A stretch of 64,000 nt of DNA, taken from Octopus sinensis (lineage: Eukaryota). A program made the position numbers and the translations under genes. Location: positions 434,001 through 498,000 of the forward strand of contig NW_021835991.1 in NCBI RefSeq assembly GCF_006345805.1, given 5' to 3'. Below the pieces are notes generated by a model. The model was not told where the DNA came from and did not search any database. It saw nothing but the letters and a program-made list of their open reading frames with translations. Positions 1,080 to 45,670 of this stretch are shown piece by piece. Within the stretch, counting starts at the first letter, position 1. Each line of letters begins with the position of its first letter.

Positions 1080-1772
1080 TATTTTCATGACTGTGAGGAT
1101 TGCTGTTGGTATATATAAATTTTATCAACTTCTTCCTGAAATTATTTTATTTACCAAAAATAAAGTGAAGAATAAAATATTAAAAGACAAAGGTGGCAGA
1201 TTTAGGATTTTATGTTGATATATCTCTACATCTGTCTACCCTGAATGTTGAACTACCAGGCAAAAATAAGCTTAATTATCAAATTTGTGGATATATTGAT
1301 GAATTCGCAAAAAAATTACGTTTATAGAAAACGCAGATATTTACCAATTAAACTAGCAGAGTCTTAAAAAGGACTTAAATTCATTGAGATTATGTGCAAC
1401 TCCACCAATTATGAAAAGTGAGGAGGTTTCCAGAATTTATCAACTGGAATTAATTAATTTACAAGGTGATATTGAACTGAAAAGTGTGTTCAGCAGCACT
1501 TCAATCATTGAATTTTATTTGAGACTACCAGATTGCCGATTTCCGAATCTAATCAATAATGATAAAATCAATTAAGCAATTCTAAGATCAACATCTGTCT
1601 GCGAATCGACATTTAGTAAACTGTTCGAATTAAATGATTTTTTTGCGTACTTAAACTTGTCAAATTAAAGCTAATTTTAATTTTTAAATAATAAATAATT
1701 GTTAAAAAAATATTGGTGGCCTTTTAATTTTTTTGTTTGTGGGCCCTAATTAAAAAAGCTTGAGGATCACTG
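1080..1772 (+). mobile_element. Degenerate hAT (Charlie/Buster, GTF2IRD2-like) transposon, 3' part with right TIR
   Basis: Broken frames read ADLGFYVDISLHLSTLNVELPGKNKL and ELINLQGDIELK...FPNL...STSVCESTFS (hAT C-terminal dimerisation motifs). Ends in TTGAGGATCACTG (TIR resembling CAGTGGTTCTCAA) followed by ATTTATAC (nnnTAnnn). The last ~250 bp recur at 27664-27913. Confidence 0.65.
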
Positions 1773-2389
1773 ATTTATACAAGTAATTTTTGTCAAAATT
1801 CATTAAAAAATTTTTATTGTGCTAATATCAAATAAATTACGAACGAGAGTATTTCTGTAAAATTTCCAGCTCAGCAATTAAAACTTGATTAAAAAAAGAT
1901 CCCTACATGTTTAAATTGAAAGTAGAATTCAGCAATTCCAAAGACTGGCAGATGTTCCTGAAAAGCATTTAAATTCGTTACTACATAAGAAAGTGTGGTA
2001 GCCAACCTAACCAGTCAAAACGCCACAGGGACATTGATGTTTAGCCAAAACGATTATCGAGACAGACTAAAATTCGTACTGATTCACAAAGAAGCACTCA
2101 GACTACACTTCACTATAATTTGTAATTTGTTAAACAAATTATTTAATTGATGTTAATCCGACCGTTGTCCGCTGGAGGTTAATCTCCTCCTTTTAGAGGA
2201 AAAAGTAACCAACACCACTCCTTGATCCTCTATCTCCAAGTTAGTTACGACTCTTTTCCCCTCATTCTCCATATTATCTTCGTACGAATGACTTGCTTCA
2301 ATTAAGAGGCTAATAATTTGTAATACTAATATTAAATATCATTTAATTCGTCTGGAAAGAAATAAATTAAAAATAGAAAACATGACAAG

Positions 2390-2904
2390 TTACAACAAAC
2401 CAGCTCTGCAATACGGACAGGTCCATTTTATCTATATAATATAAAATAATCAAACTAAAATCCATTTCCTAGCACAAGATCGATGAAAAAAATGAGAACA
2501 AGGGAATTGAGCAATTTTTGAATTTAGTTTGTACATTTCGAGGCAAATTGAACAAACATCGTAATCATTTTCACTCTTCAAAGTCCTGCGAGATTTAAGA
2601 ATTGATTTGTATTTTTTAGGCTTCCCAAGTAAGAAATTAATTCTTCGCTTTTTAATACTTCTACGTCTTAAGTCCTAAAATGTATAAACACAGATGCTAC
2701 ATCTTGATCGACTTCTAAACTGATAAAGTCAGAAAAATCTGGATATCGAGAAGATTGTTCTTCTTGAGTATCAAATTGGTACGATGGAGAATAATCTGAA
2801 TCGATTTCATAATAAATTTGAGTAATTAAAGGATGATCGTCTCGTGCTATTATGCGATACCCTAAAAGTTCGTCGTCAATTTCATTTTCTCCATTTCGCG
2901 ACAT
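2390..2904 (-). CDS. RING-H2 zinc-finger protein (putative E3 ligase), 2 introns of 26 and 24 nt
   Basis: Spliced product MSRNGENE...DQD|DLRRRSIKK...CSICLEMYKLNSKIAQFPCSHFFHRSCARKWIL|IKWTCPYCRAGLL*; C3H2C3 pattern restored across the GT-AG introns. Confidence 0.85.
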
Positions 2905-4129
2905 TTTTACGTTTGATATGATTAAACAATATTGTCGCAATAGGAATAGGAAATTAAGCCAATAAGAGCAAGAAACTAATGATTTTATAGAAAAACGTAT
3001 TTTATAATTAAATAAAATAAAAAATAATAATTATCTATAGAATATAAATAAAATACATAAAAATATTAATAAATTGATTTTATAGAAATTATTATTCAAA
3101 ATCAAGACATAGTTTTTCCAGGAGAATTTTAAATATTTAGATTTAGCAAAACTAGCTTTTGAATATTAAATCTCTAACGTATTTTTAAAATGATTATTCG
3201 ATAATCGGATGGTACTAGTTTTTGGTTATTTTTCAAATATCTAAAAACTATATTCTACAGTTGGAATTTTTCCATGTGATGCTAAAAATAGAAATATATT
3301 GGAAATTAATGCAATTTTAAATAGGAATTATTAAATTCCAATTTAGGATTCAAAATTTAATATAAAAGAAGAATTTCCGTTATTTTCCAAATGATATATA
3401 ATTTGATAAGTAAAATTGATTATTCCGACATTTTTTTATTTAATTTCGACATGATTAGTTTTTATTGTATCTTTTTGTTATTTATAAAATTTTCCAAGTT
3501 TATTTTAAATTTCAAGACTTAATCTAAGAATATTTTTCGCAATTCTTATTTAAATTAATTTAAATGCAAATTAAATGTTTAATTAGCATTTATATCAAGA
3601 AATTTACTCCCGATAGTTGTCTACTGAATTTTTATTATGAACTTATTTATTTATAAAACAGAATTTGAAATATATTTAAAATAATTAATTTTTAATTTTC
3701 AAATTTAAAGTATTTTCACAATTAGCTTTAAATTAAACTTGAGTTCGTAGAAAATCATTTCTTTGATATTTTTGGAAGGTTTGGAATGGATTTTCAATAA
3801 AAAACGCAATTTGATATGAAACATTTAAAGCAATTTAATTTTTTGTTATTTTAGGAATAATTTGGAAATTTTTTTTCAAAAATGTATATTTAATCTGTAT
3901 AATTATTTAGGATTTAATTAGCAGCAGAGGATAAGATGGAATGACAATTCCCACGCAAGATGGCTATTGGTATGCTTCGGAAAAGCCATGTCAAGTTCCC
4001 CACAAAGAGCTATTTTTTGAAAATTGACTGAAGCTCTTAGTGGGGAACTTGATTTTTTAAATTTATATAAAAAATTAATAAAGTTCTTACAATCAAATTG
4101 TTTTAATAAACTTTGATAAAATTGGTTAT

Positions 4130-4270
4130 GAATGCTTTTTAAAGCAAGGCAGTATGTTATTTCCGGTTCAGGAATTATTCCCAAAAACATTTCTGTAAAA
4201 GTAGCTAACTATGTTAATAACTATAACATTAAAAATATTTTTAATTGCGATGAAACGGGATTAGGAATTA
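4130..4270 (+). pseudogene. pogo/Tigger-type DDE transposase remnant
   Basis: NYNIKNIFNCDETGL matches the start of the pogo/Tigger DDE_1 domain; flanks are degenerate. Confidence 0.55.
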
Positions 4271-4869
4271 GAACAAAAAAACGAGATTGTATATGTCTAA
4301 CTTGGTTGAACATTGTCGAAGAAGAAATGAATCAACAAAACCGAAAAAGTCAACAAAACTGAAGTAAAATCATATACAAGCGTAAGATTTAATTTTTTAT
4401 TAATTTGTCAATAAAAGCATGAAAAAATGGCTGAGCAATTTTTTTGACGAGCACTGTATTCTCACTTGTAAACAATAACAGGAATAAATACATATGTAGA
4501 TAACATTTTTAAATTGTTTCCGATTATTATAATTTTAGAAAAATATTAGGAATGAATTGTAAGAATCCGCAACAGAAGGGAAATTCACTGACTATTTAGA
4601 TTCTTTTGAGTTTTGCGATTATATTTTTTGTGCCTGTTCAAATGGATACTTGTTCTTAACTGTGAAGGTTATTTTAAAATTAATGATAATTAATTTTTTT
4701 GTGTTTTCTTTTTTTCTTTAAATTAAAAGTATGACTTAAAAAACTGTTAAATTTGAATAAAAATTATTTTTCAGTAAAGAAACCCAGAAGGAATGCATAA
4801 ATTTCGACAGAAAGAAATGATTGCTTAATTAAATTATAATTTTTTTTCATAACCCCCAAGTTGCACATT

Positions 4870-5255
4870 AAAGTTGGCAATTCAAGCAAAAATAGCACTC
4901 ACAACTAGCCAATCCAAAGCAGAGACAGAGGAAAGGAGTCGTTTGTCCAAAATCTTCATTACAGTTTCGATGCCGAGTTCCCATTTTTGGCAGTTCCCTA
5001 CCATCGCTGATCGAACTTTATTTGTTTTTCGGGAATGTTTTCCATAGTAAAAAATTGTCATTGATAATGTAAATAAAGGAAGGTGGAAATCACCTTTAAA
5101 CAACTGTGCCGTGCTAGAAGGACTTGCCGTCTCACGGGTGGGGAACGTTGACAAGATTAACCTTAGCTCGAAAGTACCCTCATTTGGAATCGAACACACG
5201 ACGGCTGCATTCTAGCATCAAAAAGCATACTTTTAGCCAACGGGTCATTTATAGT
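4870..5255 (+). mobile_element. Possible CR1/L2-like LINE 3' remnant
   Basis: One plus frame ends RRLHSSIKKHTFSQRV, resembling the CR1-type C-terminal RKHFFSQRV motif. GC-richer than flanks; copy at ~30850-31230. Confidence 0.3.
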
Positions 5256-5748
5256 CATTTTATTGATTAGAACGCAATAGTTAATTAACTCCCAATAAAT
5301 AGAGCATTATTTGTGACTTAGTCAAAGAGAACCTTATATGGTGGTGTTTCGAAGTGGATCCAGTAACCATCAGACCGAAGTATATACAAATTAAACATCA
5401 AAAGTTAGTGATAAAAGATTCTGTTCATTTTTCAGAATATTAAGAGATATTCGATATATTTTGTCTCCGATTATAAAATGAGTCATGACAGTTCAAATTA
5501 ACTTATAATAAATCACTTTAATTAAAATATGGAAAATGAAAAAACTCAAAAAAATTTTTTAAATGTCCTTATTTGTTTAAAAATCTATAACCATCTCCTT
5601 TGTTCAATCATACTAATGTTTTCAAATTTTCAATACTTTTTTTTAAAAAGATATTTCAAATTAATTAGCTGCTATAGTTAACAAAATTATATTAAATATT
5701 TTTTAATTCAACAACAAACTCAAATAACAAATAAAGAAAACAAAACTA

Positions 5749-6222
5749 TCAAACTTTTGCCCGGCAATATGGGCAGGTTAATTTGCGAGATTCTATTTCT
5801 TTCAGCCACTTTTTAACACACGAGAAATGAAAAAAATGACCGCATTTGAGTTTAGCTACGTTTGTCTTTGGTTTGTACGTGTCAAGACATATAGAGCAGG
5901 TATCGTCAATTTGTACTTCCAGTTTATCATAAACACATTTTTTAATTCTTTTAAGTGCTGATTTTACTGACTTTGGTCTTATTTTCATTAAATACTTTAA
6001 AGAAATTAAACAAAATTAATTACTGGTTCAAAAAAATATATATCCCCAGCTTCCACCAGCCTCATAAATCGATCTATAAATAGCCTGTTCTTCATTCAAA
6101 TACCGTGGAAAAATGTGGGGACATATTGTGATTCTCTATGAGTTACAAATTGATTTATACAGCTGGAGCAAGAATTGAATATCTCGATTCATTAAAGAAT
6201 GCGGAGTGAAAAAATATGGCAT
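5749..6222 (-). CDS. RING-H2 zinc-finger protein, 3 short introns
   Basis: MPYFFTPH...QL|ESQYVPTFFH|DRFMRLVEAGDIYFFEP|YLMKIRPK...CSICLDTYKPKTNVAKLKCGHFFHFSCVKKWLKEIESRKLTCPYCRAKV*; introns 25, 30 and 29 nt, GT-AG. Confidence 0.85.
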
Positions 6223-6768
6223 TATATGACTAAAAATAAATAAAATATAAATAGTACAAATAGAAACACCACAAACGGAATAAACAATTTCAAAATATTT
6301 ATTGCATTTAAAATACTTTTTAAATAATTTTAATGTTTACATTCATTTTGTGTTTATAAAATCGTATCTATTTTATGAACAGAGTTAGAACTAAAATAAA
6401 GGCTTATTAATTGGGTTCTGGTGTTGTGTATGGAATATCAAGAGAACTATGATATCGGTGATATGAAAGTAAATATATTAAAGTAAAAATAATTTTCATC
6501 ATAATGTGGAACTACTGTTCAATAGCATAGGGAATATTCCCAGGAATTGTAGAGAATTAAATACACAAAATAAAATATCATTAGATTACAGAAGAGTCAA
6601 AGCAGTCAAAAAGATACGAGAAGCTTAAAAAAGGTTTTTGCAGATTTTATGAAAAAGAGTTAATGTGAGAATTTTTAATACGTTTAGACAAGTTTTGTGA
6701 TGATTTTATAAGTTTTATTCAAATTTTAAATTGAATAAATATTGCTTAGCAACGTTTGTTATTACAAA

Positions 6769-9700
6769 ATGACGGAAAGTACAAATGAGAGTTTACTGAG
6801 ACTTATTCAAGATCATCAGTTAGTTTATGAAAAAGAAATAAACAACTTAAAATACGATGAAAACAACTCAGAGGTTAATTTTCAATCATTTATTTCAAAT
6901 AGAAAAAACTACAAATATATCAAGAATATAACAGAGATTTAACTGATCAGAACAAATTACTCATTTCTTTATTATTTGAAAAAAATGAAAATTCTGACAT
7001 TGCAGTTCTATTTGAGCAAAATAAATCAAATGAACACAAAATTTTGTTTTTAGAAAAAGAGTATTCAGCACTTAAAGATATGTATGAACAAAAAATTGAC
7101 CAAGTATTCATTTTATTTATTTCAAATAAATATATAGCTATAATTATTTGGTGGGATTAGATCGATACTAATTAATATATGTACAATTACTAAAGTATAA
7201 ACTAATATAAATAAGTTATTTAAAGTTAAATGTTTATTAATGAATAGATAGTATCATTAAAAGAATATATCCGCCAAAAAGAAGAAGATTCAGACCTGGA
7301 AAACCATCAAAACAAACAATTTTCCCAACAAGACAACAATCAAATGACAATGAAACGGAAAACAAGAACCATACTATCCAACGTTGGCTTGAAGCTGCTA
7401 TTTTTGCACAAAATGACCAACAGTCTTTGGAACAAATCCAACCAGACCAAACTGATGAACTACGAGCTCAGCTTTCTAAACAAATTGATGAGACAGCCTT
7501 CGTGCAATCGGCATTGGAGAGCAAAGAAAGTCTCATTCAAAGCTTGGAAGAAGATTTTTTTGGACTTAAAAAACACTGCGAGTTCCTTAAAGACCAAATT
7601 CGGTGTTTGCAGATTTCTGAGGAAAAATTGTGCAGAGAAAATGCCTCATTAAGAGACCGACTGAGTTCGGAGCAGTTAAAAGTATTTTTACTAAAAAAAT
7701 ATTTAGGATGAATTTGAAAACTCTAAAGAGGTTTTTTAGTTAATTAATAATTATTTTAAATTAATTATTAAATAAAATATTAGATTGCAGAAAGAGACGA
7801 TGTGATACACAGATTATCCAATGAGTTGAACAGGACTCGACAGGGAATCAAGCAAATGAAAGGCAATATTGAACAAAGGGAAAAACAACTAAGAGAAATG
7901 AGAATTTCGCACGATAAATTACAAGAAGAGAACTTAAAATTAGTTCAAGTTAAGTGTAATATCTATGATTTAGATCGATATGAACAATCAGGCTAAAATG
8001 GTAAAACAGGACGAATTCAGGTCACTACAAACAGATAATACTGTATTGAGGCAGACTATAAGCAAACTTGTGGCTGATAACAGTAAATCGAGTTATCAGA
8101 CACAAAAAGCCACTGAAGAATGTGAGTCATTGAATAATCGATGCTTATCACAAAAAGACCAAGTAAATAATTGTGTTTAAACTATTTTATTAAAATTATA
8201 TTTTTGTAAAATTAAATATAAAATTAAAAAATATTATAATTAAAATTGTTTAGATAAATGAAATGATTGAACAAATTTCTAAAAGAGATTTAGAACTAAA
8301 GATACTAAAGGAAAAGCTCTCCAACATCAAACTGGAAGTAAAATTCAAAATATTCTAAATTTTCCAGTTAAAATTCCAAATTGACCAGAAAGACTCCATT
8401 GCTGTTGATTTGAAAACTTTCAAGTTACAAACGAACGAAATTAATCTTGAAAACGAACGGAAAACTCACAGAGTGATTTCCCGAATCCCTCATTTTAGAT
8501 TGATCAATTAGAACAAGAATTGGACCACTATTCCAAAGAGAACGAAGTCAGTACTGAGCAGGTTACTGTTAGATATAGATTGGCAGATTTCATTATTGAA
8601 TTCTCAATTAGAGGATTTTAGACGTAATGTAGAGCAGAATAAAGCTCAGGAAGTATCGGAAAGAAAAAAGCAGTCGGAATTCATATCAAGGCTGGAATCT
8701 GCTTTAGACGGTGCTCACTCCTCATTAAGAAATGAACGACAAAATAACGAAAAAAACAAGATTCTTATTAGTGATTTACAATCAGTTTTATTTGAAGAGA
8801 AAACAGAATCGGAAAGAAGATTTGAAGCAGTAATATTAAATTAATTATTTTAGTTGACATATGCGAATGACAAGTTGAGAGATTATGAACTAAAGTTGTC
8901 TGAGAGCAAATCAAAGGAGGAATCAAGTTCTTCCAAGATTGAGGAGATGAATGATGAGATGGAACATATAAGGCAGGACAGGAATAATTTACTTGAGAAT
9001 TTTAACCAACAAATGGATAAAGTCATTTCTTTAGAGGAAATTGTGGCTTGTCAGAGCAGTGAGATCCAAAAAATCCAAACTGAAGTAACCAATTTGTATA
9101 TTTTTAGAAATTTCGGATTTTAGTTGATTTAAGAGAAACTGAGGATATTAATGAAGATCTTAAATTAGAAATTAATGAGATTGAAAAGAATTTTGAGGCA
9201 TCACAACAAAGAATCGTATTATTAAGCCAACGTGAGAAGGAAATGGTTGAAAACTACGAAGAAATGGCCGACAAGATGGCACAAGCTCAGAAAGATTTGG
9301 AAAATGTTTATACACAAGTAATAAAATAAAATCAGGACATTGTAGCTCAAAGAAAGCGATTCGGAACTTGTTTGCGTAAAAACTGCTTTAAAAGACTACA
9401 AGGCGACCCATAATTCTCAAATGAAGAACATGAACAACTCGTAGAAGACCTGAATGTCCAGAAACGAGAAATTCTGTTAGCTAAAAATAGTTTGGAGGTG
9501 GCGGGAATTCAAAAAATACAACTTGAGGACCAATGTGCTTTATTAAAAGCAAAAGTTATATTTTAAAGTAGTAAAACCAGGGGGAAGAATCTGGAAGAAA
9601 GCTGGAACAACTCAAGTTAAAAGTTGATAAAATCGTCATTAAAAACGCAAAAAAAGCTGAAAAGGGTGAAAATTTAATTAAAAAATTGAAACTTGAAACA

Positions 9701-10616
9701 TGTGAAAAAGCACAAAAAATACGAGAATTGGAGGATGTGTTCGAATCAAAAAGAACACTTATCGCTGAACTAGAACAGGCTTCCAAAACTGTCTCCGAAC
9801 AAAAGTCACAATTGGAATCTTTAGAGAATGAATTGGAGACATTGCGTCAAACCAAGGAGTTTCTAGGAGGAGACATTGAGATTAAGAATGCTGAAGTATT
9901 TCCCGAAATTCGATAATTTTAGATTCAAAATCTTAGAGACGGGCTGTCAATTACAAGGACGGATTTTGAAAATTTAAAAATTTGTAACAAAAATCTGAAA
10001 GAACAAGTATTTTGTAAAAATTAAAAAAAGTGCGAACGGTCAAAAGATCAAGTTGAATTACTTTCCCGGCAAAATCGGTCCACTGCTGATCAACTCGAGT
10101 CGAGTGTAGCTGATTATGTTAAAGCTCAACACATAATTTCCCGCCATTTGAATGAATTATACACGTGTCGGTAATGAATTGAATAGTCTAATTAATGGCA
10201 GTGAAGAAGTCGAACTTGCAAGGGACGAGTCACGTGGATTACGTGTTCTTAATGAAGAATTGAGGTCGTCTGAGTTGAAAATTAAGCAAAAAAATTATAA
10301 ACTTGAAAAGGAGCTTAAAATATTGAAAAAATTATTTACTTCAACAGAACAAGATAGAACTGTGATTGAGAACCCTCAAAACTCAAGAAAAAATAGGGCA
10401 AAAATGTTAAATCCTGAATTGAATAAAACCACGTGTTTGGATCAGATTAGAGTGATGCGAAATAATGATGGCGAGGAATTGAAGACCATCGTTGATATTC
10501 CGTTACAAAATGAAGAAGAATCTTTGGTATTTATTTGTTTTTAATTATTGATTTAGATTCAATATTGGAAGGATAGGTCAGTAGATTTGAATAAAAAGCT
10601 ATCAAAATTGGAGTGA
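6769..10616 (+). CDS. Long coiled-coil protein (~1,000 aa), many short introns, family unassigned
   Basis: E/K/Q/L-rich heptad-like exons join in frame over GT-AG introns, mostly 22-30 nt. Two 1-nt homopolymer shortfalls (7324-7326, 9412-9413) are intact in copy B. The 3' end may extend toward ~11000. Confidence 0.75.
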
Positions 10617-11197
10617 TTCTTTATAATTTATTTTAAATAAATGATTTTTTATTGGAATTATATTGAGATAGATCAGGGATCGGAAATCTATGGGGCTTCA
10701 GTTTCCATATTTTGTCTCTCAGTTGTCATGATGAAAAATATGGAAGATTTCTTTCTTTTTCTTTAATGAATTCACTTGGTTGTACAATTTTCAGGTGTGT
10801 TTGTTGATCCGATTAAAATAATTTTGTAATTAACTTCTTTAAATAGACACCACATCACAAATGATCACGACGCTTAAAATTGCGTCTCCAATAGAACAAA
10901 CAGAATTTGTTGATTATAGTATCGTTGAGATGGATGAGGACCTATCTATGAAGAAAAAACTCTGGATGATTATTTTTATTAATTTTTTTAATAATTCTAG
11001 AATTTCTTAACTCTTTTATAATTTTAAAACTTTAAATAAATTTCAATTAATGGTAAACAATTAGAGGTTCAAACTTCTATTGCTCGCAAAATTCTGCATC
11101 TCGCCAGATTTCATTAAAAAAGTGCACATTTCCTCAAAACTAAGTCGTATGATAAAATCGATTATATTACATCATAAAACAGTTGAATTACAAAAAA

Positions 11198-11582
11198 TCA
11201 TTTAAATTTTAGATTATTTTGATAGAATTCAATAACAAGCTGTGGATTCGAAATCTTGAATTCAGATGCAGGGACCAGTGTGCGCTGATCTGATCCTTTC
11301 CTGGGAAACATTATCTTTAATTGCACAACCATGCAACAAGGAACAACAATTCTCCTGTAAACATCGTGGCACCAATAATTTTTTTAGGTTTATTTTTTAG
11401 TTGAATGTTATTTTGATCACTTAAATTAATTTTCTTTGAGCTAGAAAGTTCATTTGAGTTTCTAGAAATTATGTAAATTGTAAATTACATTATTTTTTTA
11501 GTCAAGGATTTTTTCTTATTTTGGCCATTTTTGATTTTAATTGAATTTTCTATAAAATTTTTCAAATAATAAAACAACCCAT
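11198..11582 (-). CDS. HP1-family protein with chromo shadow domain only (~99 aa), 3 introns
   Basis: Introns of 29, 27 and 29 nt give MENSIKIKNGQNKKKSLTKKIINSNELSSSKKINLSDQNNIQLKNKPKKIIGATMFTGELLFLVAWKGSDQRTLVPASEFKISNPQLVIEFYQNNLKFK*. The C-terminal half matches the HP1 CSD consensus PEKIIGATD..GEL.FL.KWK.....LVPA......P..VI.FYE. Confidence 0.85.
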
Positions 11583-11698
11583 TACAACGAAAATGTGAGT
11601 TCGTCTTTTTATTACTTAATTTTTTATGGGTAAAAATAAAATCGTAATTACTTTAATAATAAACTAAATTTATTAATATACAATTAAAATGATTTTAT

Positions 11699-13164
11699 AG
11701 GAAACCCGCCTGACATCGACACGTTCTACCCCTCGATTCAGGGGATTTTCAACCGTTCGTATGGACCGCCCTAATGGGCTGAATGGAGGAGGTCTTATCA
11801 CCCTCATCCGTAACAACATTCCCTTCACTAACACTACCAATTCTATACGTTCCACATTTTCCCGACGCCCACTTGGAGTTCGTCACAGTACTAATAACAA
11901 TCAATTTCTTATTCTTAAAAAATATGAAAATCCAGACAATCCAATAGACAATCCCATTAAAATCAAACTAAATTAATAAATAATGAAAAAATAATTAAAA
12001 TCTATTGTTTATACGTCGAGATTTATACTTTGACTAAAATTGTAGATTACCCAATAATGTTGCCTACACAATCGTCAACCTGTACATTCCTCCTCCTACA
12101 AATTGTTCGAAGGGCTACATTCCAGACCTCTCCTGGATCTTGCCATTGAAGAACACAATTGTGTGCAATTGCCTCTCGGACATTCCTGATCGGTTCCTTA
12201 CGACCCTCCTTCTGACCACAACCCTGTACTTTTGGAGATCAAAAAATACTTCCAAAGTCCTATTACCAAAAGGACATTTATCAACTACAAACGCGGAGTG
12301 GAGTCGAAATTCCAACAAGAAACTGATCAGTATCTCTCAAACTTCTCAGTCCTAAATTTTAAATAAAACATTTCAACAATTGTATAATCTCTGCAGACCG
12401 AAAATACATTCCCAAAGGATTCATCCGTGGGGCAAAACCATTTTTCACAAAGGAGATCATTGACCTCATAAAAGAGAGACGGGCAATAAAGAGGAATGGC
12501 CTGTGGGACTCCAACTAGGGCTCCAGATTATCAAGTATTAACGGGATAATCACTGACCACATTCTACAAAACAAAAGAGCCAGGTGGAAAGAGTTTGTAT
12601 AGACTGGATCATCGTACCAATTTAATTGAATTTTGGATTGAAATCTGTGGAAGATCACCTTCGTATGCGGAACCTGCAATTCCTCAGTACGGTTATGAAT
12701 CAGACCACCTATGTCATTTCCTCTCTCATACAAAAAACAGCCGTATGATAGTACCTACCATTGCAAATCTAACCAGTGAACTGTCTAAAATTTCTGAGCC
12801 TTCTTCCGAGAAATCGAGGACAAAGTAGATACACGACCATGTCTCCATTAAGACTATTCGAAAACTTACCTGGAATAAACTACTAGACGACTCCCCTCCT
12901 CTGGTGGACGACACGGAGTCTTAGCTGGACAGAGAAACGAGAACATCTCTGGCACAACTTCGTTCTGGACATTTCCTCCTAATTGATGAATCTGGCTATT
13001 GGTCTCCTCCTCTGAACCATCTATGCCTATTGCTTTGAAAAGCTTTCTCCGACCGGGGCCTCCGGTGGGCATTATAGACTTATGGAAGCGCCCAGCACTC
13101 GCTGCTGAGCGTCTGTGGACAGCCAGCCTTCTACAAGCTAGAGAGGTCGGGGTAACTAACTAAC
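11699..13164 (+). mobile_element. Degenerate APE-type non-LTR retrotransposon (I/Jockey group), RT region deleted
   Basis: Endonuclease motifs (GGLITLIRNNI, TIVNLYIPP), C-terminal RETRTSLAQLRSGH, (TAAC)3 tail. About 880 bp present in copy B is missing at ~12648. Confidence 0.75.
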
Positions 13165-13429
13165 TTACCTTGCAGGATTTCGACAAAAATATTTTTGTAA
13201 GCACTAGGTTTCACGAGTTTGTAAATATCAGCGAGAATCTTTGCTTATAGCGTCTATTAAGGTCACTGTTTAGCAGTGTTATTTGATTTAAATCATTTGA
13301 TTTTAATCAACAAAAAATCAATGATTTGCTGCTGATTAAACCAATTGCTGTCGTTGTAGACAAAATGCAAAATGATTTTACGAAGATTAGTCATTTTGTA
13401 GAAAACTTGAACAGACTTATATGGATTAT

Positions 13430-14560
13430 GAATGTACGGCTATTTTAGAAAAAGTGAAAACTCGAGCTGATCAAGTATTAATACTGGCGAATCTAATGAA
13501 CCCAGCATGTTGTGAGAAGTCTCTTTCAACTGCAGAGATTGACTTCGCTTTGGAGTATTGTCTGAATATCATAAATATGCTCTCCTAAATCTAATTAATT
13601 TCCGAGCTGAACCATTTAAGCAATACAATATTCTAATAAAACTTGATGGTCATTAATCATTAGCCACACACCACTCTGGACATTGCCTATCCATAAGTAC
13701 GATTATTTCCATTAAGATGCTCAAAAATGAATAAAACTATTAACTAACTTATGATACTTTTATTGAAATAGACAAATTGAAAAAACCATCGACTTTGTCA
13801 GATTCATTTTTACAAATTGTAAAAAGTGTCAACCTTTACTCATAGTAGTTCTTTAAAATGTTTTTTCAATAATCGTTTTTCGGGCTCCGTAATTAGAAGT
13901 AAAATAATCATTGTTAATACACATATTGTCATATTTAGAATGTCATTATAATTCATCATTTTGTTAATATAAAATTTGTCGATTCTAAATCATTCAGCAA
14001 ATATGATAAGTGAATATTGTGATCTCTATTATGTTGTTCATTAAATAAACATTCTTTCGCTTTTTTAATAAGCAAAAAATTTTCTAAAGAAATTCATACT
14101 TGAATAACATTTGACAGTTTTAGCATAATAAGAAACAGCTTTGAGCCAGCTTCCTAATCTCGCAGCTATTGGTTCTGGCGGGTACCCAATTTTTTTGAAC
14201 AATTGTCTTTGATAATTGTTCTTTATAACAAATGGTTGTAAAATTTTTACTATATTGTGGCAAGTAAACTCTGAAGGAGGTGGATGCCCAATAAATTCGA
14301 ATAAGTGATAAATGCTCTTTTCCTCAATTTATAGAGTGGAATGTTTTCTGATACAAATGCTTCCGTTACGTCTGACGCAAAATTTCAGAAAAATAATTTT
14401 TCAGAACAATAGTCAATTGTCTTGTATTTGTGGATATATAATTTGTTTGTAGAGAGTGCTTATGTGTTTCTCTGTGTTTGCTCACAAAAAATTGTTTTTG
14501 CATGTTACTGGCAATTCACATAATTTACAAAAAAGCATTTCACCCGATGCAACTGAAAAT
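13430..14560 (-). mobile_element. Degenerate hAT-like transposase of the CGGBP1-related type
   Basis: Broken frames read LFCKLCELPV, AFVSENIPLYKL, GYPPEPIAARLGSWLKAVSYYA and SISAVERDFS. Confidence 0.6.
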
Positions 14561-14689
14561 TCTTTGGGATTTTTTTACAAATATTTAAATGCTTTTTAAT
14601 TAGGAAAGCTTATTTTTAGCTATATGTACTTTATAATTTAGTTTAAGACTTGTTACAATAAGAGAGAAATGTTACGAAGATAATTTTAA

Positions 14690-15283
14690 TCAACCTTTAT
14701 TCTTGTATCACCCCTCCAATTTGTGTATAGCCCCTTTACGGATGACATTTTTTGCAATCGAATGGGCATTACTTATAATTTAAAATAATAATGCAATTAG
14801 TTTTTGCAAGTACCTCTTCTACTTTATATAAATAAGATAATTCAGAGACATTTTGAGATATATTTTGACGGTAAGGTGTTTTTATTTTCAAGATTATTTT
14901 TTTAATTCAGAAAAAATCTGCTTTTTTAATTGAATTATTATGTTTTCGGTTAAATGTTCAACCAAACTAAACGGTTTCATTGCCTCATTCGAAAAGATTG
15001 TAACACATTAAAAACAAATTTGTTTATTAGGATCTTGAGGATCTTTAATAAACCCAACAGAAATATATTCATCATTATATATTCTGACTTTTTAGAAATC
15101 ATGGATATTGATAACTATAGAAATCACGCTTAGAAATTTAAATAAAATATAATAAAAATCTTTTTCAAAGATTATCGACTTCTAACATTAGATTTTCATT
15201 TTTCAGATATTAGCAATTAACCATCCCCCTCACACAATAAACCTCCCCCTAGGATGCCAATCGCCCACCGTTGAGAACCACCG
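14690..15283. mobile_element. Non-autonomous derivative of the Buster-like hAT at 31297-33099
   Basis: Right TIR GTTGAGAACCACCG followed by CTCTAGAT. Internal sequence aligns to 32515-33099 and the degraded left end aligns to 31306-31330. Confidence 0.7.
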
Positions 15284-15469
15284 CTCTAGATCCAATTTGC
15301 AGAAAGCGATTTTCGTAATCACGCGAAGTCTCATTCGTTATGTAGTAAGTAAGTGCAATATATGCAAGTTTGCTGCTCAAATAAAATAGTATAACGATTT
15401 GAGCTAAATTGTTGCTGATTTAGTTTAAAAAGATATCAACTTGATCTATTTTATCTTAGAAAGTTAAAG

Positions 15470-15990
15470 TTCAACCTAACTTTATGCAAAAAAAAATTTC
15501 AGTCAATTCGTTTTAAACTGGATCAACTTCAGCTGACCTCTTTAACTGTCACACAGCTGAGACTGACTCAAACCTCTCCAAATTCAATGGACAAGATTGC
15601 TCCTGAACAACGAATATTTATGTATTGGTATCAGTGTACGCATAGGTATGGATATCTGCCAGCCTCACACCTGCAGGTAGGAGAGCACAATTTTTTCGAA
15701 CGGCTTGCATACCCTAGAAAGAGTGTTGGTGAGTATTCCTCGCCACCCAGGTCGAGGAAAAGAAAAGGATAAAGTACAAAGACAATTCTGAACTTTCGAG
15801 TTCGATCCCCTGCTTTCGAAACCTTTGGAATCGTCTACAAGATGACGACTCAGCTGCTATCGTTTGGAGCATCGAAGATCTTGCCGAAAAAAACGACCGG
15901 AGAGAGACGAGCTAGCTTTTTCAGCAAGTCTCGGTGTGCTCGCCGAAAATACCATTCCATACGCACTGCGGAGTCAAATAGCTAAGTCTT
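15470..15990 (+). pseudogene. Fragment of an unidentified spliced gene (also ~43170-43740 and ~52230-52800)
   Basis: GC-richer island with 22-25 nt GT-AG candidates (e.g. GTATTGGTATCAGTGTACGCATAG). Reads MDKIAPEQRIFM|YGYLPASHLQ and QDDDSAAIVW.IED...ASLGVLAENTIPYALRSQIA; each copy has stops or frameshifts. Confidence 0.3.
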
Positions 15991-16780
15991 CGGGCCTCGA
16001 CAAAGAATTTAAAGTGTAGTTGGTTGATTTACTTTTAATTTCTTTAAAGCTTTATTTTTCGCTACAAAAAGACTCAAGTTACTAATCTATTAAATCAATT
16101 TCAACAATTTTTAGATATAGAAACTATATGCGGTACTTTTCGCAGGAGGGTGGGAGCTTTAGCCCCCTAGAATTCCCCCTTTTTACATTCCAAACTTAAT
16201 TTGTTCTCAAAAAAAAAGTAAATAGTAATTTGAAAAAGTAGTAATCGATTGTCAACCACTGGCAGTCAGCATGGATGCGTGAACCACAAAAAACTGCAAT
16301 TCCAATTTGTTTGTGAAGTCAGAAACCAACATCCATCACGTATGTTAAACAAAAATAAAAATGCGCAAGAGCACACGAAAAAAATACGCCGTAGGACAGC
16401 CCGACTGGAACCGACCTCACCCCATAGCGATCCAAAGTGCAATGGATGACTAAAGGATGGAATGCCTGCCTAAGTGATAACAAGCATCCACGACCAGGTA
16501 AGTGAATTTTTGAAATGGCACTCTCTAAATGTATTTAAAAAATCATTTAAATTATGTTCAATATTTCCACCGGATGAATTATTTTTATTCAATTAGAAAA
16601 TTAATTTTGAGGTACGTTCTTTTTTAAATTTTAGAAAAAAACCATTACAAATTTATTATAATACTTTATTATTTTTATATTACATAAATATCAAATACGA
16701 AACAAACAGTTGATGATATAGAATACAGCTGATTGTTAGTGCTATTTTAAAAAAACAAAAAGTTTTTTAGAATGTATATA

Positions 16781-17989
16781 CACTCAACCTCTCAAATTGG
16801 CCATTTTTGGTTCCTTCAATATTGTTGGCCAATTTGAGAAATGGCCAATTAGAGAATAAAACTAGTGTTTGTGATGGAGACTCGCTAGAGAGAATACTAA
16901 ATAACTCACTTGATAAGTTTGGATAAATTATTCTATATGTATATTTAAATATTTCGAATTATTAGAGATCTGTATAGCTGTGATAACCTTCGTTACGTGA
17001 ATGTAGATGCTTTTGTACGTCTAGTCGCATTAACACATCAGTACAAATCTTATTCTAACATTAAAGTTACATGCAATCAAATACCATTTTTATTCGCCAA
17101 AAATCAGTCGTCGCCTCAACCTTAAATATTTTAAATTACTGACTGTGTAGTTTTTTTAAAGACCAGAAAATGTGCATGTTCACAAATGGGTCCTAACACA
17201 CAATGTATACTTTTTTATTCTCATATAAGAATTACAACAGTGACGAATAAACTAAATATCTTATTAGCCGACAACAGTGTGAAAATAAAAGTATCTCAAA
17301 TGCAACCTCTGTGACCACCCTATCCCAAATAATATAATCTGCACAAGTGAATGTAACTGAAAAATATTTTGACGGTACTCAATAACTAACCTAATTATTC
17401 TGATATTTCTTGTTTCCACTTTTCTTTATTGTTACATTCACTAGTCAGAATTAAATCCAAACTTGCACAATTTTTTATTGATTTAATTAAAAGAAAAACC
17501 AAATTTTAACAAAAACCAGTCCCAAAATTAGTTACAGATATGTATTTTGATGTCTGGGTCAAATGAAGAATAGTAAATCTCTTTATAAGGATTATTCACC
17601 AGTTTAAAATCACTCATAATAAAAATAGACTTGATTAATGACATTCTGATTGTTTGTAACAACCTTCACAGTAACCTCACACAACTTGAAAATTGCTTCT
17701 TCAAAATGGATACGCTAAATTTTGAGGATTGCGATCAAACCGAATAACTTTCTTCTTTTTACGGAATAATTCCAGAATCAGAAAGTTTTCTAGAATGTAT
17801 TATCAATAATTTAACTTGTCTGCCGAAAATTAATAAAATTCAAATTTATTGAAAAAATTATGAAAAATAAAAATTATGCTACTAAAAAAATTAAAATTTA
17901 TGGCCAATTTGAGAATTTATTATTTTGCAGAGTTTTTCAATTTTCCAGAAATAAATTGTTCAAAATGGCCAATTTGAGAGGGTTGAGTG
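16781..17989. mobile_element. Non-autonomous Tc1/mariner-superfamily (pogo-like) element
   Basis: TIR CACTCAACC(C)TCTCAAATTGGCCATTTT and its reverse complement, flanked by TA on both sides. Confidence 0.85.
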
Positions 17990-18439
17990 TAGTATTACTT
18001 TTTTTATTAATGCGTCCACTTTCAGTTGATTTTCCTCTTTATTGAACCACAACCAATCTTTTTAAAGGTCCCATTCATTTATCTCACAGGGTTTGATTCT
18101 TCTGTGGTCATTCTCAAGTTCGACTCGATGGCCTCACATGGAAATGCTTTCTCCGTTGATTCATTTGTAAACCGAAACTTTTTCCATTCTTTTAAATTAA
18201 TGCTCTACACGCATAGTCTACAATGTTTTTCGGATAACCACAAATGAATACAAGCTTGTGTGGGTCCTTCGAGATTGATTGAATAGCAGTGATGTTCATA
18301 GAATTTTCACACAACACCGTTTCATATTTGAACCAATGGTACGTAGTTGCCTTGGAATTGTAGATTACTCTCAGTTCACTAGCAAGCATGTCGAATTTGT
18401 AAGCTTTTCTGACAAAATTTTCATTAAAATGAATTTCTT

Positions 18440-18562
18440 AACCTTCACTCAATCAAACTATATCTTAACCCTAACCCCTGCCATATCCTAACCTCAACCA
18501 CTTACTAATCCAAACCATATACTAGTCCTAGCCACTTCCAAACTTTACTTCTAATTTTAACC
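18440..18562 (+). repeat. Degenerate telomere-like (CCCTAA)n tract
   Basis: TTAACCCTAACCCCTG...CCTAACCTCAACC...CTAATCCAAACC; about 20 decayed hexamers. Also at ~47315-47440 and ~56370-56495. Confidence 0.5.
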
Positions 18563-19038
18563 GTAATTCTATCTATTAAGCTGTATTAACATATCAGAGA
18601 TTTAACCTCATTTTGTAGTTTATTTAACCATACAAATCAGTATAAACATATACATATTTTGTAATTATTATTAAAAAAGTAAACACAACATGATAAGAAA
18701 ATTAAAAAAAAATTTTTAGCCCGAAATTATTTTGCGAGTCTATGTTTAGTCCAGGTGTAATCAGGTCTTGACAGTTGAAATTTATGGCTATTATATATAA
18801 ATAATGTTTGGGATAATTGAAAAATTTTAGTTGCACGTTTACAAAGTCAAAAAATGTAACAAGCTGCCCATGTCACATGAACACTTTTTTGCGGCTAGAT
18901 AAATTCGAGTTTATAATTAACATTTTATCAAATAATTGTGTCAAAATAAAGCAAGCATTCTTATTTACTAGTTACGTAGGTAAAATTAGAGTTTCAAAGT
19001 ACAATGTAACCGTGCCTATGCGTATTCGTCTGCCCATA

Positions 19039-19748
19039 TCTTAATAATAAAATGGTATGGTGTGTGTCTGTCTGTCTGTCTGTCTGTCTGTGTGTGCACA
19101 CCAACTTCAAATTGGCAATACGATGTCCTCGACTTACATGATGAGGTCCTTAAAACCTTCCCCCCCAAAAAAATTAAAAAAAAATTTTCTGCATTTTGGT
19201 TAAAATGAACAACTACAATGTCCTCGACTTACATGATGAAGTCCTTAAAACCTTCCCCCCAAACAAATTAAAAAATAATTTTCTGCATTTGGTTAAAATG
19301 AACAACTACAATGTCCTCGACTTACATGATGAAGTCCTTAAAACCTTCCCCCCCAAAAAAATTAAAAAAATTTTCTGCATTTTGGTTAAAATGAACAACT
19401 ACAATGTCCTCGACTTACATGATGAAGTCCTTAAAACCTTCCCCCCAAAAAAAATTAAAAAAAATTTCTGCATTTTGGTTAAAATGAACAACTACAATGT
19501 CCTCGACTTACATGATGTGGTCCCCAAAACCTTCAAGCCAAAAAATTAAAAAAAATTATTTTCTGCGTTTTTGTTAAAATGAACAACAAGAAAGTCCTCG
19601 ACTCACATGATGTGGTCCCCCAAAACCTTCAAGCCAAAAAATTAAAAAAAATTATTTTCTGCGTTTTTGTTAAAATGAACAACAAGAAAGTCCTCGACTC
19701 ACATGATGTGGTCCCCCAAAACCTTCAAGCCAAAAATTAAAAAAAATT
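19039..19748 (+). mobile_element. Helitron 5' fragment (H1)
   Basis: Starts A|TCTTAATAATAAAATGG at an A^T site (the empty site reads CCCATA|TTAT at 47913), then a (GTCT)n microsatellite and ~7 tandem units; truncated at 19748. Confidence 0.75.
19110..19748 (+). repeat. Short tandem array (~7 units, 91-96 bp), inverted relative to the large array
   Basis: Units of type ATGAACAACTACAATGTCCTCGACTTACATGATGAAGTCC switch at ~19515 to the type found in 21355-27455. Confidence 0.95.
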
Positions 19749-27455: not shown

Positions 27456-28530
27456 GGATATTCTTTCTTATTAAAATTTTTTGACAGGAAGGTTCTTAGA
27501 GGATATCAACCTTTTATTGTGCCTCATTATCGAATAACTACAAAAGGGAAGGTTTTGACAATTTGATCTGGTTTGTAACAATTTGAATGTGGGTGTGCAC
27601 AGACAGACAGACAGACACACAGACAGACAGACAGACACACACCATACCATTTTATTATTAAGACTACCAGATTGCCGATTTCCGAATCTAATCAATAACG
27701 ATAAAATCAATTAAGCGATGCTAAGATAAACATATGCATGCGAATCGACATTTAGTAAACTGTTTGAATTAAGTGATTTGTTGCGTACTTAAACTTGTAA
27801 AATTAAAGCTAATTTTGATGTTTAAATAATAAATAATTACTATAAAAATATTGGTGGCCCCTTTAATTTTTTTATGTTTGTGGCCCCTAATTAAAAAAGC
27901 TTGAGAATCACTGATTTATACCAGTAATTTTTGTCAATATTCATTAAAAATTTTTATTGTGCTAATATCAAATAAATTACGAACGAGAGTATTTCTGTAA
28001 AATTTCCAGCTCAGCAATTAAAACTTGATTAAAAAAAGATCCCTACATGTTTAAATTGAAAGTAGAATTCAGCAATTCCAAAAGACTGGCAGATGTTCCT
28101 GAAAAGCATTTAAATTCGTTACTACATAAGAAAGTGTGGTAGCCAACCTAACCAGTCAAAACGCCACAGGGACATTGATGTTTAGCCAAAACGATTATCG
28201 AGACAGACTAAAATTCGTACTGATTCACAAAGAAGCACTCAGACTACACTTCACTATAATTTGTAATTTGTTAAACAAATTATTTAATTGATGTTAATCC
28301 GACCGTTATCTGCTGGAGGTTAATCTCCTCCTTTTAGAGGAAAAAGTAACCAACACCACTCCTTGATCCTCTATCTCCAAGTTAGTTACGACTCTTTTCC
28401 CCTCATTCTCCATATTATCTTCGTACGAATGACTTGCTTCAATTAAGAGGCTAATAATTTGTAATACTGATATTAAATATCATTTAATTCGTCTGGAAAG
28501 AAATAAATTAAAAATAGAAAACATGACAAG

Positions 28531-29045
28531 TTACAACAAACCAGCTCTGCAATACGGACAGGTCCATTTTATCTATATAATATAAAATAATCAAACTAAA
28601 ATCCATTTCCTAGCACAAGATCGATGAAAAAAATGAGAACAAGGGAATTGAGCAATTTTTGAATTTATATTGTACATTTCAAGGCAAATTGAACAAACAT
28701 CGTAATCTTTTTCACTCTTCAAAGTCCTGCGAGATTTAAGAATTGATTTGTATTTTTTAGGCTTCCCAAGTAAGAAATTAATTCTTCGCTTTTTAATACT
28801 TCTACGTCTTAAGTCCTAAAATGTATAAACACAGATGCTACATCTTGATCGACTTCTAAACTGATAAAGTCAGAAAAATCTGGATATCGAGAAGATTGTT
28901 CTTCTTGAGTATCAAATTGGTACGATGGAGAATAATCTGAATCGATTTCATAATAAATTTGAGTAATTAAAGGATGATCGTCTCGTGCTATTATGCGATA
29001 CCCTAAAAGTTCGTCGTCAATTTCATTTTCTCCATTTCGCGACAT
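28531..29045 (-). CDS. RING-H2 protein, duplicate of 2390-2904
   Basis: Same exon structure, open frame, few substitutions. Confidence 0.85.
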
Positions 29046-30189
29046 TTTTACGTTTGATATGATTAAACAATATTGTCGCAATAGGAATAGGAAATTAAGC
29101 CAATAAGAGCAAGAAACTAATGATTTTATAGAAAAACGTATTTTATAATTAAATAAAATAAAAAAATAATAATTATCTATAGAATATAAATAAAATACAT
29201 AAAAATATTAATAAATTGATTTTATAGAAATTATTATTCAAAATCAAGACATAGTTTTTCCAGGAGAATTTAAATATTTAGATTTAGCAAAACTAGCTTT
29301 TGAATATTAAATCTCTAACGTATTTTTAAAATGATTATTCGATAATCGGATGGTACTAGTTTTTGGTTATTTTTCAAGTATCTAAAAACTATATTCTACA
29401 GTTGGAATTTTTCCATGTGATGCTAAAAATAGAAATATATTGGAAATTAATGCAATTTTAAATAGGAATTATTAAATTCCAATTTAGGATTCAAAATTTA
29501 ATATAAAAGAAGAATTTCCGTTATTTTCCAAATGATATATAATTTGATAAGTAAAATTGATTATTCCGACATTTTTTTATTTAATTTCGACATGATTAGT
29601 TTTTATTGTATCTTTTTGTTATTTATAAAATTTTCCAAGTTTATTTTAAATTTCAAGACTTAATCTAATAATATTTTTCGCAATTCTTATTTAAATTAAT
29701 TTAAATGCAAATTAAATGTAGTTGTCTACTGAATTTTTATTATGAATTTATTTATTTAGAAAACAGAATTTGAAGTATATTTAGAATAATTTATTTTTAA
29801 ATTTCAAATTTAAAGTACTTTCAAAATCAGCTTTAATTTAAACTTGAGTTCGTAGAAAATCATTTCTTTGGTATTTTTGGAAGGTTTGGAATGGATTTTT
29901 AATAAAAAACGCAATTTGATATGAAACATTTAAAGCAATTTAATTGTTTGTTATTTTAGGAATAATTTGGAAATTTTTTTCAAAAATGGATATTTAATCT
30001 GTATAATTATTTAGGATTTAATTAGCAGCAGAGGATAAGATGGAATGGCTATTGGTATGCTTCGGAAAAGCCAGCTATTTTTTGAAAATTGACTGAAGCT
30101 CTAAGTGGGGAACTTGATTTTTTAAATTTATATAAAAATTAATAAAGTTCTTACAATCAAATTGTTTTAATAAACTTTGATAAAATTGG

Positions 30190-30335
30190 TTATGAATGCT
30201 TTTTAAAGCAAGGCAGTATGTTATTTCCGGTTCAGGAATTATTCCCAAAAACATTTCTGTAAAAGTAGCTAACTATGTTAATAACTATAACATTAAAAAT
30301 ATTTTTAATTGCGATGAAACGGGATTAGGAATTAG
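30190..30335 (+). pseudogene. pogo/Tigger transposase remnant (duplicate)
   Basis: NYNIKNIFNCDETGL. Confidence 0.55.
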
Positions 30336-31296
30336 AACAAAAAAACGAGATTGTATATGTCTAACTTGGTTGAACATTGTCGAAGAAGAAATGATTCAAC
30401 AAAACCGACAAAGTCAACAAAACTGAAGTAAAATCATATATTCTCATTTGTAAACAATAACAGGAATAAATACATATGTAGATAACATTTTCAAATTTTT
30501 TCCAATTATTATAATTTCAGAAAAATATTAGGAATGAATTGTAAGAATTCGCGACAGGAGGAAAATTCACTGACTATTTAGATTCTTTTGAGTTTTGCGA
30601 TTATATTTTTTGTGGCTGTTCAAATGGATACTTGTTCTTAACTGTGAAGGTTATTTTAAAATTAAAGATAATTGATTTTTTTGTGTTTTCTTTTTTCTTT
30701 AAATTAAAAGTATGACTTAAAAAACTGTTAAATTTGAATAAAAATTATTTTTCAGTAAAGAAACTCAGAAGGAATGCATCAATTTCGACAGAAAGAAACG
30801 ATTGCTTAATTGAATTATAATTTTTTTGCATAACCCCCAAGTTGCACTTTAAAGTCGACAATTCAAGCAAAAACAGCACTCACAACATGCTAATCCAAAG
30901 CAGAGACAGAGGAAAGGAGTCGTTTGTGCCGAAATCTTCATTACAGTTTCGATGCCGAGTTCCCATTTCTGGCAGTTCCCTACCATCGCTGGCCAAACTT
31001 TATTTGTTTTTCGGGAAGGTTTTGCATAATAAAAAATTGTCATTGATAATGTAAATAAGAGAAGATGGAAATCACCTTTAAACAACTGTGCCGTGCTAGA
31101 AGGACTCGCCGTCTCACGGGTGGGGAAGGTAGAGAAGATTAACCTCAGCTTAAAAGCAGCCTCATTTGGAATCGAACACACGACGGCTGTATTCTACCAT
31201 CCCAAGCATACTTTTAGCCAACGGGTCATTTATAGTCATTTTATTGACTAGAACATAACAATTTATTATTCATTAATTAAATCCCAATAAATAGAG

Positions 31297-33099: not shown

Positions 33100-33543
33100 A
33101 AATAGAGCATTATTTGTGACTTAGTCAACGTGACTCTTATATGGTAGTGTTTCGATGTGGATCCATTAACCATCAGACCGAAGTATATACAAATTAAACA
33201 TCAACAGTTAGTAATAAAAGAGTTTGTTCATTTTCCAGAATATTAAGAGACATTTGATAAATTTTGTCTCCGATTATAAAATGAGCTAGGACAGTTGAAA
33301 TAAATTTATAATAAATCACTTAAATTAAAATATGAAAAATGACAAAACTCGAAAATTTTTTTTGGAAATATTCTTATTTGTTTAAAAATCTATAACCATC
33401 TCCCTTGTTCAATCACACTAATGTTTTCAAATTTTCAATACTTTTATTTAAAAAAATATTTCAAATTAATTAGCTGCTGCATTATATTAAATATTTTTTA
33501 ATTCAACAACAAACTCAAATAACAAATAAAGAAAACAAAACTA

Positions 33544-34017
33544 TCAAACTTTTGCCCGGCAATATGGGCAGGTTAATTTGCGAGATTCCATTTCTTTCAG
33601 CCATTTTTTAACACACGAGAAATGAAAAAAATGACCGCATTTGAGTTTAGCTACGTTTGTCTTTGGTTTGTACGTGTCAAGACATATAGAGCAGGTATCG
33701 TCAATTTTTACTTCCAGTTTATCATAAACACATTTTTTAATTCTTTTAAGTGCTGATTTTACTGACTTTGGTCTTATTTTCATTAAATACTTTAAAGAAA
33801 TTAAACAAAATTAATTACTGGTTCAAAAAAATATATATCCCCAGCTTCCACCAGCCTCATAAATCGATCTATAAATAGCCTGTTCTTCATTCAAATACCG
33901 TGGAAAAATGTGGGGACATATTGTGATTCTCTATGAGTTACAAATTGATTTATACAGCTGGAGCAAGAATTGAATATCTCGATTCATTAAAGAATGCGGA
34001 GTGAAAAAATATGGCAT
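33544..34017 (-). CDS. RING-H2 protein, duplicate of 5749-6222
   Basis: Same exon structure; two amino-acid changes in the last exon. Confidence 0.85.
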
Positions 34018-34563
34018 TATATGACTAAAAATAAATAAAATATAAATAGTACAAATAGAAACACCACAAATGCAATAAACAATTTCAAAATATTTATTGC
34101 ATTTAAAATACTTTTTAAATAATCTTAATATTTTCATTTATTTTGTGTTTATAAAATTGTATCTATTTTATGAACAGAGTTAGAACTAAAATAAAGGCTT
34201 ATTAATTGGGTTCTGGTGTTGTGTATGGAATATCAAGAGAACTATGATATCGGTGATATGAAAGTAAATATATTAAAGTAAAAATAATTTTCATCATAAT
34301 GTGGAACTACTGTTCAATAGCATAGGGAATATTCCCAGGAATTGTAGAGAATTAAATACACAAAATAAAATATCATTAGATTACAGAAGAGTCAAAGCAG
34401 TCAAAAAGATACGAGAAGCTTAAAAAAGGTTTTTGCAGATTTTATGAAAAAGAGTTAATGTGAGAATTTTTAATACGTTTAGACAAGTTTTGTGATAATT
34501 TTATAAGTTTTATTCAAATTTTAAATTGAATAAATATTGCTTAGCAACGTTTGTTATTACAAA

Positions 34564-45589: not shown

Positions 45590-45670
45590 AAACAAACAGT
45601 TGATGATATAGAATACAGCTGACCGTTAATGCTACTTTAAAAAACAAAAAGTTTTTTTAGAATGGATATA

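Follow-up and report, generated by a model that had tools for sequence, protein, structure and literature searches.

The minus strand of the analysed window, a stretch of 64,000 nucleotides, carries a short gene of the HP1 family (11198..11582) which encodes a basic hinge followed by a chromo shadow domain (CSD), is interrupted by three ultra-short introns and is accompanied by a second intact copy. The hallmark of full-length HP1, the N-terminal chromodomain, is absent, as far as recognisable domains in the 64 kb are concerned. According to the definition in PMC3380853, the CSD occurs exclusively in HP1 genes, and the family comprises those that combine it with a chromodomain as well as those that have it alone; hence the gene belongs to this family by its CSD alone. 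We assign a probability of about one half to the reading that this is a gene derived from HP1 and consisting of the hinge and the CSD, whose product would dimerise and would be unable to read H3K9 methylation.

Structure of the gene

The gene, modelled from ATG to stop by spliced translation, has four exons. The sequence of exon 1 (11579..11582), ATGG, provides just four coding bases. Intron 1 (11550..11578, 29 nt), placed by spliced translation, is the least supported intron of the model. It is followed by exon 2 (11489..11549), which encodes the basic part of the hinge (ENSIKIKNGQNKKKSLTKKI) and is supported by the phmmer alignment to the CBX5 hinge. Intron 2 (11462..11488, 27 nt), assigned from the sequence and the spliced translation, contains an in-frame TAA. 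Exon 3 (11330..11461) encodes the remainder of the hinge and CSD residues 1–20, with the CSD starting at 11388; intron 3 (11301..11329, 29 nt) interrupts the codon of Trp66 within the CSD, and exon 4 (11198..11300) encodes the second half of the CSD and then TGA, both exons being supported by the Pfam match and the spliced translation. All three introns begin with GT and end with AG. The spliced ORF of this copy yields the 99-aa product MENSIKIKNGQNKKKSLTKKIINSNELSSSKKINLSDQNNIQLKNKPKKIIGATMFTGELLFLVAWKGSDQRTLVPASEFKISNPQLVIEFYQNNLKFK. Thus the three GT–AG introns of 27–29 nt and the protein of about 99 residues, proposed in the original prediction, are confirmed.

Intron 3 is the best of all GT–AG removals of 18–40 nt, as it yields the top CSD score, 57 bits, compared to 50 bits for the runner-up. 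The ATG of exon 1 opens the sole ATG-initiated stop-free path that uses at most two introns; it has G at both −3 and +4 and is the first ATG downstream of the boundary of a LINE-like remnant described below.

The longest plain ORFs at the locus are 44 and 30 aa long, and an ORF list therefore cannot show the gene; its absence from the ORF track, pointed out at the outset, is borne out. Whatever the status of the gene, prokaryote-style ORF tracks miss genes whose introns are 23–29 nt long.

The lengths of introns 1 (11578-11550) and 3 (11329-11301), 29 nt each, are not multiples of three, and retention of either shifts the frame. Given also the in-frame TAA in the 27-nt intron, retention of any one intron truncates the protein. 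Truncation upon retention of tiny introns is a pattern described for Paramecium.

Shadow domain and hinge

The Pfam Chromo_shadow profile (PF01393) matches residues 47–98 of the spliced protein over its entire length (profile positions 1–52 of 52) with an E-value of 2.1e-16 and a score of 60 bits, the cut-off being 22.4. The best matches in PDB are the shadow domains of CBX5 and CBX1, with E-values from 1e-15 to 1e-13. Hence the HP1 CSD, called clear in the original prediction, is confirmed by the HMM search.

The CSD is identical to that of human CBX1 (HP1-beta) at 27 of 53 positions (51%). Across the domain, 47–51% of the residues are shared with human CBX5 and CBX1, and 40% with fly HP1a. 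For comparison, the CSDs of fly HP1a and human CBX1 are identical at 28 of 53 positions. As the present domain is about as close to CBX1 as that of fly HP1a, either it evolves slowly or its derivation from a canonical HP1 is very recent, and the suggestion that the gene is of the young and fast-evolving kind finds no support. The high conservation would reflect either such a very recent origin or long constraint acting on the gene itself. A profile search yielded no relative with identity above 57% among the best 120 of 980 matches, which were generic metazoan HP1 fragments only, and a word-index protein search with the spliced protein produced no match.

The putative hinge consists of 46 residues (1–46) with a pI of 10.2; the earlier description of it as basic and rich in K, N and S agrees with the spliced sequence. 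It aligns loosely to the hinge of CBX5 (phmmer) and is a low-complexity segment in an A+T-rich genome.

The domain was aligned with those of CBX1, CBX5 and fly HP1a. At the positions equivalent to I161, Y164 and L168 of HP1-beta, which form the dimer interface, it has I, Y and L, respectively. The equivalent of W170, the Trp of the PxVxL pocket, is replaced by Phe, and the protein stops one residue past this position, so that there is essentially no C-terminal extension. Further, the CSD is basic (pI 9.6). Like canonical HP1 proteins (CBX1/CBX3/CBX5, HP1a), the product has a CSD that retains the three dimer-interface residues, and the putative hinge preceding it contains a KKK patch. Unlike them, it has no N-terminal extension, no chromodomain and no GFxRGL motif ahead of the CSD, in addition to the Phe at the W170 position, the end one residue later, and a basic CSD where the corresponding stretch of CBX1 is net negative by residue count on the alignment.

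Absence of a chromodomain and the upstream region

When human and fly HP1 proteins were compared with the 64-kb window by tblastn, only the two shadow domains were found, and no chromodomain. We then applied a home-made chromodomain HMM, built from eight sequences, to the six reading frames and to 7,555 peptides covering every single removal of an 18–40-nt intron on both strands of the 64 kb; no chromodomain emerged, and the only signals were cross-matches to the CSDs. As a positive control, the CSD profile recovered both gene copies at 57 bits in the same intron-removal scan. Finally, the 3.2 kb upstream of the gene, translated in all three frames of the minus strand, gave no chromodomain match in Pfam. 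Within the 64-kb window, these searches support the original statement that no chromodomain exon is visible.

The spacer upstream of the ATG (11583..11697) is indeed 115 bp long, as stated originally, has an A+T content of 83% and carries no chromodomain signal. Beyond it, a decayed LINE-like remnant (11697..12646) lies on the plus strand, head-to-head with the gene. It is common to both copies and full of stops and frameshifts. The motifs DIALIQET, SDHNPV and GFRPSHST, resembling those of the endonuclease and the reverse transcriptase of a LINE ORF2, are recognised there by eye only. No Pfam match was obtained for this segment, either in three frames or with stitched pieces, nor any match in PDB, and it shows no similarity to the reverse-transcriptase ORF at 44332-45549. 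Hence, of the claim that a LINE begins beyond the spacer, the ORF2-like motifs stand, but the profile and structure databases do not support it.

In both copies, no stop interrupts the frame of exon 2 over the 35 codons that precede the proposed acceptor. By eye, the fragment 'YDFIFTHKKLS...FRCNGLF' of this frame slightly resembles 'EYLLKWKGFS...LDCPELI', and a chromodomain remnant was considered. This candidate was rejected: the score against the chromodomain profile is −1.4 bits, and most differences between the copies in this region change the residue.

Segmental duplication and comparison of the copies

The second copy of the gene (38988..39363, minus strand) is split into the same four exons, and its spliced translation is 96 aa long, in agreement with the suggestion that the gene is duplicated. 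The only indel between the copies is a 9-nt in-frame deletion in copy 2 just past intron 2. Self-BLAST demonstrates that the two genes reside in two copies of a segmental duplication of about 17.5 kb, at 1512..19051 and at 27649..47925, the latter having extra insertions. Substitutions amount to 2.3% in the gene-bearing block. Each copy of the duplication contains a RING-H2 gene, a coiled-coil gene, the HP1-like gene and a repeat cluster.

The RING-H2 finger ORF is situated at 5749-5988 on the minus strand (zf-RING_2, E-value 3e-14), and its second copy at ~33550-33790. The coiled-coil gene is long and has many short exons; it occupies ~6700-10544 on the plus strand, convergent with the HP1-like gene, and its second copy is at ~34500-38335.

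The CSD, intron 3 and the 3′ flank are identical in both copies, and all substitutions fall in the 5′ half of the gene; as read from the alignment, about six of them are non-synonymous and four synonymous. Neither copy has lost its ATG, its stop, its reading frame or any of the six splice dinucleotides. When the 12 observed substitutions were placed randomly, the gene was still intact in 31–36% of trials. Under neutrality, an intact gene in both copies and an in-frame indel have a joint probability of about 0.1, a value that is suggestive without reaching significance. Comparison of the two copies gave no significant signal of purifying selection. The complete identity of the CSD was considered as a possible sign of such selection and discarded: the identical run over the CSD is 210 nt long, the 6.4-kb alignment contains five runs longer than this, and intergenic DNA forms part of the low-divergence stretch; hence the identity of the CSD is not evidence of selection.

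Ultra-short introns and the host

The 3′ third of a gene for an axonemal dynein heavy chain, closest to DNAH6, is located at ~58570-64000 on the minus strand and runs off the end of the window. It has GT–AG introns of 23–25 nt, the junctions being gap-free against human DNAH6. Only the introns at such gap-free junctions were counted; the minimal-intron dynamic programme over-calls when long introns are allowed. The relatives of this dynein in the protein collections searched are at most 66% identical to it. Exact-protein look-ups with the 44-aa ORF of the HP1-like locus and with the reverse-transcriptase ORF described below came back empty; in the collections searched, none of the proteins of the window has a close relative. 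Since a neighbouring gene has introns of 23–25 nt, the introns of the HP1-like gene fit the host.

Among animals, introns shorter than 30 nt with bare GT/AG have been reported only from the myxobolid myxozoans and from the dicyemid Dicyema japonicum (PMC13644364). The presence of an axonemal dynein suggests a ciliated animal. Myxozoans are not known to have cilia. The G+C content of the window is 33%. The dicyemids are ciliated (PMC6736024), and the genome of D. japonicum has 49% repeats, many LINE copies and a G+C content of 36.7% (PMC6736024). From these observations we infer, rather than demonstrate, that the host is most likely a ciliated animal with ultra-short introns, a dicyemid being the likeliest.

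The end of the dynein gene is involved in another rearrangement, a very recent tandem duplication of about 8.9 kb with 99.2% identity (41043-49974 and 50099-59019). It takes in the last ~450 nt of the dynein gene, and a detached dynein 3′ fragment is observed at ~49524-49974. The same duplicated segments carry an intact reverse-transcriptase ORF of a LINE family, 405 aa long, at 44332-45549 (plus strand), repeated at 53387-54604 (RVT_1, E-value 4e-28); the copy in the first duplication unit has lost this ORF by deletion (16686-16708). When the window was scanned with Rfam and for tRNAs, no match was obtained.

Reliability of the 5′ end and alternative explanations

When the 303 nt upstream of the CSD were shuffled, an ATG-initiated stop-free path of at least 40 codons with at most two tiny introns arose in just 0.5% of shuffles. 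Hence the hinge exons are unlikely to have arisen by chance and are real coding sequence, at least historically. With exon 2 kept and the 148 nt upstream of it shuffled, an ATG reached exon 2 directly or via one tiny intron in 22% of cases, so exon 1 and intron 1 say little about a functional start. Further, with decayed repeat-like DNA starting just 115 bp away from the ATG, the native promoter may be missing. These features could also belong to a young 5′-truncated HP1 relic, the main rival explanation, which we consider possible but less probable. The hinge and the CSD would then be what is left of an HP1 gene that makes no protein and has not yet decayed, the chromodomain exons having been lost by rearrangement, partial duplication or repeat insertion, and both the ATG and intron 1 would be fortuitous. 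The 22% chance rate, the lack of a selection signal between the copies, and the position of the locus in a repeat-rich, recently rearranged region all agree with this explanation, as does the conservation of the CSD, similar to that of canonical HP1 and thus expected of a very recent copy of a canonical gene. Truncated relics at the breakpoints of segmental duplications or transposons likewise feature an abrupt loss of homology, here 115 bp from repeat-like DNA, and a young duplication. However, unlike in such relics, the ORF, the start codon, the splice sites and the stop are intact in both copies (the joint neutral probability of ~0.1 given above), and, counting from the repeat boundary, no ATG comes before that of exon 1, which has a purine at each of the positions −3 and +4. 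The 99-codon ORF without stops or frameshifts also differs from the shared LINE-like remnant riddled with them, although this argument is weak, as the repeat may have been dead on arrival. As a relic, the locus would be no more than what rearrangement of a repeat-rich region ordinarily leaves behind.

Two other explanations concern the origin of the 5′ part and of the duplication. The exons could form the 3′ part of a longer gene, its 5′ exons, encoding a chromodomain or not, being located past the repeat cluster or outside the window; intron 1 being the least supported part of the model and the open frame upstream of exon 2 in both copies would be consistent with that. We regard it as unlikely. 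No chromodomain was detected on either strand of the 64 kb with 18–40-nt introns removed, and both tblastn and the Pfam search of the 3.2-kb upstream segment were negative as well; the upstream open frame has a negative chromodomain score (−1.4 bits) and mostly residue-changing differences between the copies; and an intron of several kilobases would be exceptional, as the introns checked in the window are 23–29 nt long. Moreover, in the less rearranged copies, nothing but repeats lies between the gene and its next upstream neighbour on that strand, the DNAH6-like dynein, which makes a chromodomain exon across one large intron unlikely. Still less probable, to the point of being barely tenable, is the capture of a gene fragment by a transposon of the Helitron type, the two gene copies being transposon copies. 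A fragment of a Helitron-type Pif1 helicase and repeat arrays do lie between the two gene copies, but the HP1-like gene is 7.5 kb away from the Pif1-bearing element, it shares its duplication with a RING-H2 gene that looks intact and with a long coiled-coil gene, and the block of 17.5 kb is a mixture of unique and repeat DNA, as in a segmental duplication.

Possible function and comparison with known HP1 proteins

The reading that we prefer is that of a partial HP1 which retains the basic hinge and the CSD, has no chromodomain, and was copied together with its neighbours by the recent segmental duplication of about 17.5 kb. If expressed, the 11-kDa product is predicted, judging by the interface residues, to dimerise through its CSD, either with a second molecule of its own kind or with a full-length HP1 whose gene lies elsewhere. 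Having no chromodomain, it would be unable to read H3K9 methylation, and its binding of canonical PxVxL partners would probably be poor, as both the C-terminal extension and the acidic surface are missing. In Drosophila HP1a, removal of the last residues of the C-terminal extension increases dimerisation and severely decreases the binding of PxVxL peptides, and positively charged residues of the partners contact acidic residues of the shadow domain (PMC12526061). A heterodimer with full-length HP1 would have one chromodomain rather than two and a defective partner groove, and the protein might thus act as a cap or a modulator of HP1 bridging rather than as a reader of heterochromatin. The hinge may contribute to nuclear import or nucleic-acid binding.

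CSD-only derivatives of HP1 were cited in the original prediction as known from Drosophila, with Umbrea as an example. This is well supported: 11 CSD-only instances, including HP6/Umbrea, Skadu, HP1Lcsd and HP1Ncsd, have been described, and at least seven partial HP1 genes of either type have persisted over millions of years (PMC3380853). Chromodomain-less HP1s are thus already known from flies, and the present gene appears to be one more, in a very distant lineage. Like HP6/Umbrea and the other CSD-only genes of Drosophila, it is assigned to the HP1 family with a CSD only, seems to be lineage-restricted and is found in a repeat-rich setting; duplication or truncation of a full HP1 is the presumed origin in each case. 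The differences from Umbrea are of several kinds. The dN/dS ratio of Umbrea is at about the 95th percentile of D. melanogaster genes, with possible positive selection, whereas the CSD considered here appears slow, with 51% identity to CBX1. Unlike Umbrea, the gene has retained introns and hence is not a retrocopy. Two further contrasts with Umbrea are that the basic hinge is kept and that the C-terminal extension is almost entirely lacking. As for Umbrea itself, doubt has been cast on whether it is essential (PMC10523450).

If expressed, the gene would show that HP1 derivatives without a chromodomain occur not only in flies but also in a very distant animal lineage with a reduced genome, and its product would be a natural minimal CSD protein, with neither a chromodomain nor a C-terminal tail, for probing HP1 dimerisation alone. 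A bolder possibility, which we consider improbable, is that this is the sole remaining HP1-type gene in a reduced parasite genome. The dimer function would then have been uncoupled from the reading of H3K9 methylation, the chromodomain and the C-terminal extension having been shed and a basic CSD acquired. A milder version, rated no higher, would make it a conserved and expressed 'dimer cap', the first Umbrea-like protein outside Diptera.

Repeats between the copies

The two gene copies are situated 7.5 kb and 11.6 kb from the repeat arrays. The claim that the gene flanks a satellite holds loosely, in that both are in or beside the duplicated blocks, but at these distances they are not immediate neighbours. 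As for the proposed role of the protein at the 95-bp satellite, the link amounts to co-location in the segmental duplication, and nothing in the sequence ties the protein to the repeat.

The 95-bp satellite is a part of a larger inverted structure (19038-27664), bounded by a terminal inverted repeat of about 85 nt with (TGTC)n / (ACAG)n at 19038-19114 and ~27579-27664. Inside the inverted repeat, a 93-bp unit is present in 6.7 copies (19119-19747), and the 95-bp unit, in the opposite orientation to the former, in 63.8 copies (21358-27422) with a higher-order period of 286 bp. This structure resembles a foldback-type element and is positioned exactly at the junction of the two copies of the segmental duplication. 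The fragment of the Helitron-type Pif1 helicase (19842-20546, minus strand; PF05970, E-value 8e-16) lies between the two inverted repeat arrays, and its stop-free stretch of 253 aa contains an ORF of 234 aa.
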